This document shows positions 20,501-26,500 of a stretch of DNA of 40,675 bases, in pieces. The notes beneath the pieces are model-generated. The model was given only the letters and a program-made list of their open reading frames with translations. It searched no databases and had not been told where the DNA came from. Both the position numbers and the translations under genes were made by a program. Each line of letters opens with the position of its first letter. The stretch's first letter is position 1. The DNA is taken from assembly GCA_002269645.1 (NCBI GenBank), contig NIVC01003762.1, positions 1 through 40,675 of the forward strand, in the 5' to 3' direction. The stretch is from Macrostomum lignano (Eukaryota).

Positions 20501-23500
20501 CCGGTGGCACCGCAAGCAACCAGAACAACGACGACGATGAGGACGACGAGGAGAAGGACAAGAAGCCGAGCGTCATGACGCGCCTGCGGCCTTACATCCG
20601 GCGCTTCTGGCCGCTGCCTTGGTGAGCGTTAGACTTGGCTGGTGATTTTGCGGTATGCGGTCAGTTAGTTCTCAGGGCTTTGGCCACTGCTGCATATCAA
20701 GGAGACTGTCGACTCATTGCCAGCCTATTCCACTGACCCCAGATACTTAAATCGATACAAGTATGTTCATTAAGCACTTTCTCATTGTTAGGCCGTCAGA
20801 CATACTCTCTCCTTGACACCCTGACATGTAGCTGCAGGGTGGTCCGAAGACACAGCGGGCGGCGAGTGGAAAATCGATCCAACAGTTTGACCATAGACAA
20901 TTCGTCTATGAGTGAGTGAAGGGTGGGACGCTTGCTGTGAACAACCATTGGCAAGAAAGTCGGTGGTTTCAGGCAGAAGCGATTTTAGAACAGTCCATTC
21001 ATCTGCTGACGTAATGGTTCGACAAATGACTGACGGAGAACGCTGGCGTGCTATTGGTATGATCGATGCCACTTCACGACATTTACGACAGTCACGACAC
21101 TCAAAATTTGCCTGCTCGATCGTCTTCTCCGTATTCTTGACCGTGTGGGGATGTGCGTTGTCATGGTGCAGAAGGTATGGGGCCGCGGTACCCATCGGGC
21201 CGAGATGACAACACACTACGCACTATGCTTCTGCACTATGACAACGCACATCCCCACACGGTCAAGAATACGGAGAAGACGATCGAGCAGGCAAATTTTG
21301 AGTTGCTCTCACACCCACCCTACTCTCCGGATTTGTACCGGCTGACTTCGCCATCTTTCCAAAGATTAAGAAGCTGCTGCGTGGACGAATCTTTGCTTGT
21401 TGTGGGAGCCTGGAAGCATTGACTCGCCAAGTTCTCCTTCATGAGATGCCGCGCTCAGATTTTGCTGATGCCATTGACGACATATACAGCGAATGGCAGA
21501 ATGTGTGCAGCGCAGTGGTAAACTATGTGGAGAAGCCTCAGGACAATGTTGATGATTCATTTTTAACTGTTCTTTTCTCAGCTTTCATGTTGCGGATGTT
21601 TTGCTGATTCGTTGGATGTTTCGTTGTTTCGTGCATCAGGTACAAAGCTTTGGTCTATGGCAATTTGTAGGAGTAGCACAGGGGGTGGGGCAGAAAAGTG
21701 TTTTTATCTCAAGAGTGCCAGCAGATAGAGAAATAAATAGAAAGTCATTTTAACGGGCAGATAATTCTCGTTTCAACTGCTACAAACTAAATATTTCTGA
21801 TCGGTCAGAAAAGGCTGTAGCAGGGAAGCCTCTATGGTCACTGCGCATCGATCATAGAGGCTTGCCTGGCTGTTGTGAAGAAATTGCACCGACTTTTGGG
21901 ACAACCCCCGTAGTTCCCTGTTGTCATTCGTTTTCCTGAAACTGTCTATTTCAATCCTGTGGATTGAGCGATGCGCATTGAGTCGTGCGTCAGAGTAAAT
22001 GTCTATGGCCCAGAGTCTCCGATTGCTACTCAACTTGAGAGGCTTTAATTCTCTTGAGAAAAGGGTAGACACGTTTGTCTGTTGCTGAGTATATGTTCAG
22101 AATCAAGACACAATAAACTGGTTGGTACAAGTATAAATGTTCGAAGAAGTACTATTTGAGTCTTTAGTGGTGTAACGTTGCTGAATTTCAAGTAGCTCTC
22201 TAACAAGATCAAAAGATGCTGGCGTAGTAAAATTCTTTCTAATCGGTTTACGTAACACTGCATCTGTTAACTTTTGATTTCCAACGCATGCTTGCGCAGG
22301 TGGACTCACTACGTCGGCTACTGCCTGGCGGTCGTCTGGATCGGCGTCTGCACCTACCTCATGGTTGAGTTCGGCGGCGTACTCGGCGAGGAGAAAACGG
22401 CCGAATGGCTGGCCGCGATGTTCGTGACGCTGTTCCAGTCGATCATCCTTGTGCAGCCAGTCAAGATCCTCGTCCTGGCCATCGTGTACGCCCTACTGGT
22501 GAAGAAGATCGAAGAGGACGAGGACGAAGTCACCCGGGATCTGGTGATGGCCGGCGCAGCCAAGATGCACCAGCGCATGACCATGCGCGACCTCAGCGAT
22601 CCCGCCAAGATGAAGGCGTTCCTTCGGTCGCGTCGGGTGCCGCCGCCGCCGGATCTGGAGACGCTGCGTGCGCTGCGCGAACAGAGGTAAGTCCGATCTT
22701 CAATGAGCCAGCCAGAGAGAGAGAGAGAGAGAGAGAGAGAGAAAGAGAGAGAGAGAGAGAGAGAAGAGAGGTCACGGCGTGTTTAAAAATTTTTTTAATA
22801 TGGGCTGCCGGTTTCGAGCCTCTGGGCTCTTCGTCAGGCAAAAATCAGTGTGTAATGCAGTGCAACTTGGTCTTTTAAGTATTTTTTTCTTAGTCTGATA
22901 AAATTTATGAGTAGTTGTACATATGAGGAATGTACATTTAAAACCCTGTTTTGTCTAGCTCTAACATGTCCCAGAGGCTTTTCCCCATTCATTCTAATCG
23001 ACGGTATATTTAGTATATAAAAATTGTTTTTTTTCGAAGTGCTATACGATTAGATGAAATGCCGGTATTGAGGGTACGAGCATAAAAATCGATATTTGTG
23101 CGTACAATCAAGTACGAGTAGTTTGGATAAAATAAATGACAAAGTGAATAAATATTGTACTTCAATAGGGTAAAGTGAGCGCATTGGTTAAAATGATTCA
23201 ATGGTTTCCTGGCTGAGATTTAAATTGATTGGGAGCCAGGAGGCTCTGTAAATTACGTTGCCGTGTAAATGCGGGCAGTATGCGGGAGCCTGGTTTATTT
23301 TGTAGCTTATCAAAGTTTTTAGCAATCTCGTTGGCGAGCCAGACCGTAGATGGGTGAAAAGGAAGGACCATTGGGATGGGTCGGAGAAGATGATTGTCGA
23401 CCCTGATGTTCGTACCCGGCGGTTTGTCAGTCCCCAGTTTTTTAATCCAGATTTCTTCCCTTAGTTCGATTTTGTTGTTATTAAGAACTGTTCAATGGCA

Positions 23501-26500
23501 ATGGTGACAAAGTTTGCAATCGAGTGATTGGGGGTGAGAAAGTGCTCTGACCCCGAAGTAACGACTCTCCTGTTAATATTTGACCTGTGCTGGTTCATTC
23601 TATCTCTCATTGTTCTTCTAGTCATACCTACTTAGAGGATTTTCCCAGGGTGACACTGGTTGCAGGAGATGCCATAGATGATGCTCTTGGAGCCACAGGA
23701 CAGGCTCTGAGAGATTAAAAAACCGGAAGCCGGTCTCAGTCCCTGGGCGGAGAGAGCATGCGGTGAGTGGGTGCAGCATTTGCAGCGGGATGACCCACAG
23801 GGATGGAACCCTTTGAGAAGCAGACCCAAATTAAGTCCCCTATCTAGCAGCCTCGTCTCAGACTCGGAGAGTTTGAAAGTGGGGTGTAGATTCAAAATTT
23901 TGCCTTCCAGTTTGGGAGGCCTACAGTAGTCAGCTAGTTTAAAGTTCTCAGCCAGGAAGCCAGCGCCAGTATAAAGTCAGGCGCTGAGAAGGATACAATT
24001 GGTTTAAGAGGAGGAGAGGCAATAAGAGTAACAGGTGAGAGTTTCTTACTCAGAATTTGAGTCAATTCTTCACCGCTGGCAAAGGGCGGAACCAGAAGGA
24101 TCTTATGTGCCAGACTGTCTGCTCTCAGTAGATCGATGGCCTCAGAGAGCCACTCTAGCCAGTGGTCTGTGCTGAGCAGCTCGTCCGGCAGGACCAGCAC
24201 CGTTGACCGAGCGCATTGCCGGTTCCGCAGGGCGGCAGACCTCAGTAGAGATGGTAAGGCTGACAGTGAGTACTCATGAACCTCTGTGATTGCCGGCAGT
24301 TTGAGGCCCTCGAAAGGCTTTGAGCAGAGGACCAGGTTCAGGCAGTCCCTGCTGATGATGAGCGAACCGGGTTGCTCAAAGGTGCTGGGTGAGTTATTCA
24401 GATGCGGCCTGTGGCGTTCCGGACCACCAGAGGAGTCCTCAGAGTCCGGGGAGGGCGACGTTTCGCAGGTGAAGCAGGCAGTCCCACCAGAGGAAGAGTC
24501 GGGGTCACAAAAAGGTCGTCAGCCACCGACGTACAGCCGTTCTCAGGAGAGAGAGAGAGAGAGAGAGAGAGAGAGAGAGAGAGAGAGAGAGAGAGAGAGA
24601 GAGAGAGAGAGAGAGAGAGAGAGAATCTATGAGAGAGGTTGCTGCTGGTATCCTTACTTGTGCTGATGTCTATGGCCGAGCTATCAACTTGCTTTCTTTT
24701 TTCCGTCTATATCTATGTCTATGGGCAAGACCAAGTCTACTGCTGTCAAATGGGAATTCTTAGCTGGGTTGGCTTAATTAACCATCAACTTGGCTGACAA
24801 AAGCAATGCTTCAGTTTCATGAAGATTTTACAATATAAGACGCTACATCCTGACAAGAAAATTATTTGGACCTATCTAAAAACCTGTTGGAGGTTGCAGC
24901 ATCTTCAACTGTGTTTCTGCATAAGGTCACTCAACTGGATTGAGAGATGAAAGATAGATTATCTATTACAATAAGAAGCAATGGAGAGAAACAAGGACTG
25001 GGGGGTCGTCACACACACCCTCAATTACCCCAGCTAATGCTGGCACCAATTTTACCGCTGGGTGAACTGAAGCAATGCAGAGAGTTAAGTGTCTTGCTCA
25101 AGGATACAAATAGTTCCAGTAGGATCGGGAATCGAATCCCCGACCTTCAATTCATAAGTCCGACGCTCTAACCACTGGCTACAACTCCTTTCATAGGAGA
25201 GAATGGGATTTTAACTTTGTTAATTAACTAGTAGCTAGTTGTTAATTTGAGCTTTCATTTTTGCTTCACTCCGCAGAATCAAGGAACAAGCGATGAACGA
25301 CATTCTTGGCGACATAATGTTTTACATAATCTTCCTGATTATATTAACCATGGCGGCCTACACCAACCAGGACTACAGGTCATTCATTCAGAACCATTTG
25401 GTCAAAGGCACCATCACGGGAGTTGACGCAGACGGGCCGAACCTTGACAGCGTGCAGCGCATCGAAGACCTGTTCACCTACGTTGGCGAGTTCGCCGCAC
25501 CTCGCCTGTACTCCAACGTGTGCTACAACGGCGAAGTCTGCGACATGGCCGGCCCGGGCTGGAGCTGGGACCCGCACCTGTTCCTGGTGCGCAAGCCCCA
25601 GCTGAGACAGTTGCGAATTAAACGGCCGGGCACGTGCAAGATTGAGAAGTACTTCAAGGATTCCATCTACGAGTGTCGCCCGGAGTACAGCATGCTTAAT
25701 GACGACGAAGCCTCCTACTTGCCCATGTGGCAGCCTTTTAACTCCAGCTGTGAGGGCTCGTGAAATATTCGGTTTATTTGGTTTATGAAAATTATACTCG
25801 TATGTAGCATTTGTGTAGATTTTTTTCTCGTTAGGTGTAGATCGAGTGTAAGGAGGCTAGAGAATTTTTTACTCCAAATTTTTGCCTCGCTGTCTGGATA
25901 CAGCTGGTTGGGAGGGTTCAGTCATGTACATTCCGGGTGAAGGCATGGTTAGGGAGTTGGCGGGGAGGGTTTAATGAATGTACATTTCGGGTGAAGGCAT
26001 GGTTAGGGAGCTGGCGGGGAGGGTTTAATGAATGTACATTTCGGGTGAAGGCATGGTTAGGGAGCTGGCGGGGAGGGTTTAATGAATGTACATTCCGGGT
26101 GAAGGCATGGTTAGGGAGCTGACAGAGAGGGTTTAATGAATGTACATTCCGGGTGAAGGCATGGTTAGGGAGCTGGCGGGGAGGGTTTAATGAATGTACA
26201 TTCCGGGTGAAGGCATGGTTAGGGAGCTGACAGAGAGGGTTTAATGAATGTACATTCCGGGTGAAGGCATTGTTAGGGAGCTGACAGAGAGGGTTTAATG
26301 AATGTACATTCCGGGTGAAGGCATGGTTAGGGAGCTGACAGAGAGGGTTTAATGAATGTACATTTCGGGCGAAGGCATTGTTAGGGAGCTGGCGGGGAGG
26401 GTTCAAACCAAGGACCACTAGAAGTTACCATTGTATAACACTGTTACTTCTACAAGCGTAGTGATCCTTGGTTCAAATTCTTCCACTTTAATGATTTTCC

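Follow-up and report, generated by a model that had tools for sequence, protein, structure and literature searches.

Penelope-like elements (PLEs) fall into several described clades, of which the Neptune clade (Arkhipova 2006; Craig et al. 2021, PMC8557442) most resembles the element treated here. In Neptune elements the reverse transcriptase (RT) lies upstream of the endonuclease (EN), which is of the GIY-YIG type with a CCHH motif and has a CX2-5CxxC Cys knuckle directly on its 5' side. Further features of the clade are N-terminal GxKF/Y-type and DKG motifs, a minimal hammerhead in the terminal region and, optionally, an open reading frame 1 (ORF1) that encodes an SGNH/GDSL esterase and is set off by a frameshift. 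Neptune PLEs also show a published bias for insertion into microsatellites, for which the knuckle is thought to be responsible. We analyzed a PLE copy of this general type in Macrostomum lignano. The window, i.e. the whole stretch of DNA that was analyzed, comprises 40,675 nt of contig NIVC01003762.1 (GCA_002269645.1), and all coordinates follow its plus-strand numbering. The element itself covers 1776 bp on the minus strand (22771-24546) and was delimited by homology to PLE proteins and by its location between two microsatellites. It is very probably a single dead copy of a Neptune-like PLE with a C-terminal EN, which lost its RT by an internal deletion.

Of these Neptune features, the element and its relatives share the knuckle, the CCHH-type GIY-YIG nuclease, the N-terminal motif, the minimal hammerhead (a remnant in the window copy) and the association with microsatellites; an RT upstream of EN and the DKG motif are found in the relatives, and an ORF1 esterase in some of them. 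Element and relatives differ from that clade in that a segment of about 55 residues, which normally lies between the thumb and the knuckle, follows the nuclease in this lineage, and in that the window copy has neither an RT nor most of ORF1. With the Naiad and Chlamys clades the lineage has the GIY-YIG EN, the microsatellite bias and the frequent 5' truncation in common, and with Naiad also the knuckle and CCHH. Naiads, however, consist of EN, a Lys/Arg-rich (KR-rich) block, a CxC motif and RT, in this order, and have no canonical hammerhead, whereas here the RT of the relatives precedes EN, hammerheads are present and neither CxC nor a KR-rich block is found. The likeness to the Hydra clade extends to the C-terminal EN, hammerheads, short elements and aquatic hosts. 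Hydra elements nevertheless lack CCHH, combine a CxCX5C knuckle with a DKT motif and insert into (TA)n, in contrast to the CCHH, the CX4CxxC knuckle and the (TC)n flanks observed here and to the DKG of the relatives. (TA)n is also what has been drawn as the flanks of PLEs, unlike the (TC)n of this element. The Penelope/Poseidon clade has no Cys knuckle upstream of EN, whereas one is present here. Finally, non-LTR retrozymes are, like the window copy, RT-less PLE derivatives which keep the hammerhead-bearing terminal region. They are short, non-coding, tandem and derived from pseudo-long terminal repeats (pLTRs), whereas the window copy is single, codes for EN and the tail and has an inactive ribozyme.

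Three-frame translation of the minus strand revealed a single reading frame leading from the PLE N-terminal motif through the knuckle into EN with its QHRS, EHF and NHS motifs. The N-terminal motif at the start of ORF2 (23830-23892) is kept as NLHP..RGLN and matches the N-termini of the relatives P0003 (LHPSFSPSPAVHSLLLKGLNF) and P0006 (NLHPTLLISADLLSLLSKGLTF). It is followed by the codons LGLLL (23815-23829), which constitute an in-frame deletion junction, and then by the Zn-knuckle and the GIY-YIG EN (23384-23814). The knuckle reads CGSSRCKCC and thus has the form CX4CxxC; in alignment A3 its residues C156, C161 and C164 show little or no variation. Between the GIY and YIG halves of EN the two Cys of the CCHH type are present, and the EN columns C, Y, G, R, H, E and N are invariant in alignment A2. 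The reconstructed peptide matched the Pfam family GIY-YIG (PF01541) with E = 2.7e-6, above the curated cut-off. Behind EN the frame contains the segment PFHP...NLxxLL (23201-23383), which was recognized with a custom hidden Markov model (HMM), by tblastn and in AlphaFold2 (AF2) models, and ends at the stop codon TGA 23200-23198. Neither a KR-rich block nor a CxC motif follows EN in the three-frame translation, only the 55-residue segment and then the stop.

The nuclease part of this frame is broken in two places. An in-frame TAA (23634-23632) replaces the Tyr in the YVG half of GIY-YIG, where every aligned relative has Tyr, and a frameshift of 1 nt is located near 23487-23485, after which coding resumes through the post-EN segment to the TGA. 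The window element is a dead copy: besides the TAA and the frameshift it has no ORF1 start and a mutated ribozyme cleavage site. We found no RT in the window, as six full-length PLE proteins searched by tblastn against the entire 40.7 kb matched 23808-23213 only, i.e. EN and tail. An earlier note on this DNA, made from its letters alone, had described an N-terminal motif joined directly to the knuckle and the GIY-YIG/CCHH nuclease, the segment PFHP...NLxxLL placed after EN up to the stop 23200-23198, and the lack of RT motifs. Translation, Pfam and tblastn bear out all of these, and the junction proved to be in frame; the TAA within GIY-YIG did not appear in that note.

The history of the missing RT can be read from the relatives. 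When the reconstructed peptide was searched against a collection of 5.8 billion protein clusters, two proteins were returned, P0001 (E 2.6e-70, 56% identity) and P0002 (E 6e-57, 54%; identities from alignment A2), both originating from Logan assemblies of sequencing runs. Both contain RT motif C in the form YLRYIDDIF or FLRYIDDIF as well as the thumb (PF26215), which abuts the knuckle (...LPKGFHPCGNSRCACC; KGFHPCG/KGFGPC), and in both EN is followed by the same segment as in the window. An exhaustive phmmer search with P0001 yielded 12,896 proteins at E <= 0.001. Among them are full-length ORFs of 730-740 aa ending where the segment ends, such as P0003, P0006, P0008 and P0056. RT, DKG motif and thumb are present in P0001-P0008 (PF00078, PF26215, PF28514), while of a PLE-type RT protein the window keeps the N-terminal motif only. 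A sequence search of the PDB with P0008 gave no match.

The closest full-length relative is P0003 (730 aa). Its residues 529-725 match 23808-23213 of the window, while no match to residues 1-528 was obtained anywhere in the 40.7 kb (both by tblastn). Since P0003 aligns with residues 529-725 only, about 500 codons of RT and thumb (~1.5 kb) have been deleted in the window copy. They are missing between ...GLN and KGFHPC, where P0003 residues ~21-528 have no counterpart in the window (tblastn; alignment A2), and comprise the entire RT and thumb. As RT and thumb are located directly upstream of the knuckle and EN in the relatives, EN is C-terminal to RT in this lineage.

We then turned to the position of the segment, which according to the earlier note lies between RT and EN in canonical elements and comes behind EN in this copy. 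An HMM built from ten copies of the segment was scanned against 157 relatives, of which 111 could be classified. It found the segment after EN, at the C-terminus, in 53 of the 111 and between thumb and knuckle, before EN, in the other 58, with the limitation that P0097 and P0118 were scored as having the tail after EN through a spurious match of the N-terminal regular expression. E-values reached 1e-20 or below in either position. The linker of P0042, a protein with canonical order (residues 696-759), likewise maps downstream of this protein's EN match when aligned to the window by tblastn. In the AF2 models, one protein per layout, a beta-alpha-beta-alpha unit is seen at residues 296-343 of P0001 (pLDDT 87.5) and at 161-210 of P0016 (pLDDT 90.5); the EN part of the P0001 model matches the catalytic domain of I-TevI with a TM score of 0.81. 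The segment is thus homologous in both positions, and a large group of RT-bearing relatives has the order with the segment after EN as its native layout.

The canonical position stated in the note was found in 58 of the relatives, but because the post-EN order is common to this large group, the order of the window copy is ordinary and not a peculiarity of this copy. Segment-knuckle-EN and knuckle-EN-segment are formally related by circular permutation. In a neighbor-joining tree of the RT C-terminus and thumb the two layouts were not cleanly split, the best bipartition placing 85 of 101 proteins correctly, and for this reason we make no claim as to one or several rearrangement events. A description of the layout with the segment after EN was not found in the literature searched, Arkhipova 2006 and Repbase being outside that search.

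A second feature typical of PLEs lies in the 3' untranslated region, where we located the remnant of a minimal type-I hammerhead (22803-22845, minus strand), 32 nt from the 3' microsatellite. It reads CCUGACGA-A-GAGCC-CAGA-GGCUC-GAAA-CCGGCAGCC and thus keeps the core CUGACGA, an unpaired A, a stem II of 5 bp and GAAA. Rfam, at both gathering and E-value thresholds, reported no hammerhead in the window, in the element or in the relatives' loci L001 and L002. Because minimal PLE hammerheads fall below the Rfam models, we used our own descriptor (CUGANGA, stem II hairpin and GAAA) together with a shuffle control. The descriptor matched one site in the window versus 0.055 expected. It further detected one site each in L002, L003 and L004 and one per tandem unit (three in total) in L007, and the DNA sequence of the window motif is conserved in L002. 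The hammerhead-like motif pointed out in the earlier note is therefore supported, and its remark that clades with N-terminal EN lack hammerheads agrees with the literature (PMC8557442).

All five elements, namely the window copy, L002, L003, L004 and L007, have the unpaired A 5' of stem II. Stem II has a different sequence in each element, but pairing is always kept by compensatory changes: GAGCC/GGCUC in the window, GAGCA/UGCUC in L002, GGAUAA/UUAUCC in L003, GACC/GGUC in L004 and GGCU/AGCC in L007. Stem III is palindromic in the relatives (ACCGGU in L002, ACGU in L003, AUUAAU in L004, ACGCGU in L007), whereas ACCGGCA of the window is not a palindrome. For PLEs, dimer-dependent minimal hammerheads have been described in which an unpaired nucleotide precedes stem II on its 5' side (PMC4209133), and judged by their sequence the motifs of the relatives match this type. 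At the cleavage site the window reads ACCGGCA versus ACCGGUC in L002, and its stem I is down to 2 bp. On account of the mutated cleavage site and the short stem I the window ribozyme is predicted to be dead. A CCHH-type GIY-YIG EN together with a terminal hammerhead, both characteristic of PLEs, is hence found in this lineage, in the window with a mutated ribozyme.

Both ends of the element adjoin microsatellites. On the 5' side (24547-24624) the plus strand carries (GA)39, with 100% matches in TRF, and on the 3' side (22714-22770) TRF found an imperfect (AG)29; on the strand of the element both are (TC)n. The 5' tract is presumed to be one half of the target microsatellite. In four loci (TC)n is found next to the hammerhead or an end of the element, namely on both sides of the window copy and in L002, L003 and L007, where it comes after the hammerhead or the 3' end. 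In L003 a (TC)n tract lies between an upstream partial copy and ORF1. The plus-strand ORFs on either side belong to a polycystin-like gene as its exons; 25293-25763 matches Polycystin_dom (E 1.6e-8), and 22274-22690 ends at a splice donor (GTAAGT), about 25 nt from which the target microsatellite begins. With exons of this gene on both sides, the element is intronic and antisense to the gene.

A similarity search of the 40.7 kb revealed no further copies of the element. When we searched for a pLTR, the 5' end of the window copy was not significantly similar to its 3' end, and the copy therefore shows neither a pLTR nor a partial tandem organization. The relatives do show this layout: hammerhead and (TC)n are located upstream of ORF1 in L003 and L004, and L007 contains an array. 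In this locus (1-14685), which harbors the relative P0005, units of ~5.0-5.06 kb are arranged head to tail, each with one hammerhead (at 721, 5777 and 10779) and (TC)n/(CT)n tracts. Such a head-to-tail array corresponds to the tandem organization typical of PLEs.

Upstream of ORF2 the window copy contains the remnant of an ORF1 (23934-24518, minus strand). It is truncated at its 5' end, comprises 194 open codons without ATG and ends with ...ASWLRTLN and the stop TAG 23936-23934. Directly before this stop and in phase with ORF1 lies the slippery heptamer U_UUA_AAC (23937-23943), and ORF2 follows in the -1 frame. An upstream ORF1 with ORF2 in the -1 frame was observed in all seven elements considered, including the window copy with its ORF1 remnant. 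The ORF1s of the relatives measure 956 aa in L003 (1113-3983), 827 aa in L004 (1680-4163), 804 aa in L005/L006 (L005 1605-4019), 705 aa in L010 (887-3004), at least 431 aa in L008 and 792 aa in L009, the last of which has canonical order. In the window, L003 (~3974-3983), L004 (~4151-4163) and L005/L006 (L005 ~4007-4019) the heptamer U_UUA_AAC is in phase and 0-1 codon ahead of the ORF1 stop, with the -1 frame open into ORF2 (FKL...). L008 (~1240-1250) and L009 (~5990-6000) have U_UUU_UUA in phase instead, and in L010 an overlap UGAUG takes the place of the heptamer. The relatives that conserve U_UUA_AAC share no more than 29% identity with the window in their aligned ORF1 C-termini. This pattern suggests that -1 frameshifting actually takes place at the heptamer. 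The pattern also agrees with the legend of Fig. 1 in PMC8557442, according to which a frameshift with a pseudoknot may set a PLE ORF1 apart; a description of the frameshift site itself was not found in the literature searched.

The ORF1s of the relatives contain several enzyme domains. In L003 we found an AlkB-type 2-oxoglutarate-Fe(II) oxygenase (E 2.2e-27) with intact HxD, H and RxNxTxR residues, and the ORF1s of L004 (1.9e-22), L005 and L010 contain a NADAR domain. At the ORF1 C-terminus of L004, L005, L008, L009 and L010 an SGNH/GDSL esterase with GDS, GxND and DxxH blocks is located; it was not detectable in the window remnant or at the C-terminus of L003 by phmmer, BLASTP or an esterase HMM. 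Esterases are carried by Neptune-like PLEs (PMC5408684; PMC3905857), and NADAR has been reported in ORF1s of Tx1 long interspersed nuclear elements and in Gypsy elements of Ectocarpus (PMC12477816). Our literature searches found no paper describing NADAR or AlkB in PLEs. It is conceivable, if rather doubtful, that the lineage represents a major PLE architecture not described so far, in which a circularly permuted EN module is combined with a long ORF1 that is read by frameshift and carries enzymes acting on RNA or nucleotides, namely AlkB or NADAR, beside the known SGNH esterase.

Taken by its layout, knuckle, CCHH and hammerhead, the window copy is best called Neptune-like, and the following course of events would account for it. 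An intact element of the lineage would have consisted of a long ORF1 and an ORF2 in the -1 frame reached at the slippery heptamer. ORF2 would have encoded, in this order, the N-terminal motifs, RT, thumb, the CX2-5CxxC knuckle, GIY-YIG(CCHH) and the segment of ~55 residues, and the 3' region would have contained a minimal hammerhead able to cleave only as a dimer. The copy presumably arose by target-primed reverse transcription from a nicked (TC)n/(GA)n microsatellite in the intron of the polycystin-like gene, antisense to the latter, and would have been truncated at the 5' end within ORF1. An in-frame internal deletion of ~1.5 kb would have removed RT and thumb and joined the N-terminal motif to the knuckle; its place in this series of events is one that we infer. 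The TAA in YVG, the shift of frame by 1 nt within the nuclease region and a pair of substitutions where the ribozyme would cleave would be later lesions, and the copy would now be functionless.

Several observations weigh against this reading. The relatives with an RT belong to other organisms, having been found in Logan and ENA assemblies, and show no more than 41-56% identity; they represent related families and not copies of the same family. The possibility raised earlier that other copies contain an RT at the junction therefore holds for related families (54-56% identity), and copies of the same family were not among the proteins found. The assignment to Neptune is a putative one drawn from layout and motifs, the window copy being without RT. 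The in-frame deletion, the EN catalytic residues, which are preserved save for the change of Tyr to a stop, and the 194 stop-free codons of ORF1 would also fit a young, transcribed non-autonomous derivative. Furthermore, phmmer, BLASTP and an esterase HMM from five relatives detected no significant similarity between the ORF1 remnant of the window and the ORF1 of the relatives, and the 5' 129 residues (ORF1 remnant and N-terminal motif) used as query returned no homologue. For lack of sequence similarity the remnant was assigned only by its position and by the C-terminal ...L(x)LN with the frameshift site, which it shares with L003, L004 and L005. In the 90 nt 3' of the slippery sites the fold energy was not below that of shuffled sequences and no hairpin was shared, as calculated by pseudoknot-free folding.

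The derivative just mentioned leads to the alternative that fares best, a non-autonomous, nuclease-only PLE family for whose copying full-length relatives would provide the RT in trans, and of which the window would show a decayed member. The deletion is in frame and the remaining EN keeps its invariant residues. The 3' region that a PLE RT would need to recognize is kept as well, and microsatellite of the target type is located on both sides, as expected if the deleted RNA itself had been inserted. Moreover, non-autonomous PLE derivatives with hammerheads, the retrozymes, have been described (bioRxiv 10.64898/2026.07.22.740005). On the other hand, the window contains no second copy, and a deletion is in frame in one of three cases by chance. 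No protein with this junction was present in the 5.8 billion clusters, and a 24-mer spanning the junction had 0 matches in metagenome contigs, the host genome probably lying outside both collections. Besides its stop and frameshift the copy has a dead ribozyme, and every homologue found to share this EN and tail has an RT at the junction. We consider such a family unlikely, and the suggestion of the earlier note to this effect found no positive support.

A composite of two fragments, one comprising the end of ORF1 and the N-terminal motif, the other EN, tail and 3' untranslated region, could have arisen by two insertions or by template switching. Partial copies in tandem or nested arrangement are typical of PLEs (PMC8557442), and the array of L007 with its units of ~5.06 kb is an example from this lineage. 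The two pieces agree, however, in strand and reading frame and follow each other in the correct order, with neither a microsatellite nor foreign sequence in between, and P0003 is the best match of both, which makes such an origin very improbable. Hardly credible at all is the derivation from an N-terminal-EN, Naiad-like element by internal deletion, also put forward in the earlier note: a deletion did occur and EN is now near the N-terminus of the remaining ORF, but such a parent is at odds with the RT and thumb upstream of EN in the relatives, the GxKF/Y-type N-terminal motif before and not after EN, the absence of a KR-rich block and CxC motif after EN, the hammerheads of the lineage, which Naiads lack, and the (TC)n flanks as opposed to the (TA)n reported for Naiads. 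We therefore retain the reading of a dead Neptune-like copy with an internal deletion.

Apart from the element, minisatellites are unusually abundant in the window, their periods ranging over 17-54 bp. Arrays were found at 1-1747, 3861-4714, 5111-5574, 18796-19200, 25902-26403, 27029-27679, 28145-28508, 31623-32220, 33677-36623 and 39091-40629. A G+C-rich unit of 52 bp makes up the two long arrays 33677-36623 and 39091-40629. The array with 54-bp units at 25902-26403 gives rise to long repetitive ORFs on both strands, which are probably not genes. In addition, a degenerate telomere-like repeat, (ACCCTAATA)n, with a period of 9/18 and 76-84% matches is located at 19752-19921.

By itself the window copy is of little weight, being a dead transposon fragment in an intron. 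Its relatives show, however, that in a large proportion of the knuckle-bearing PLEs from public assemblies the 'linker' segment comes behind the nuclease, and an annotation expecting the order RT-linker-EN would take such copies for rearranged. These relatives are two-ORF, EN-containing PLEs with a conserved -1 site and with ORF1s into which AlkB, NADAR and esterase domains have been recruited. If this has not been described before, it adds to the retrotransposons that borrow RNA-repair and ADP-ribose enzymes.

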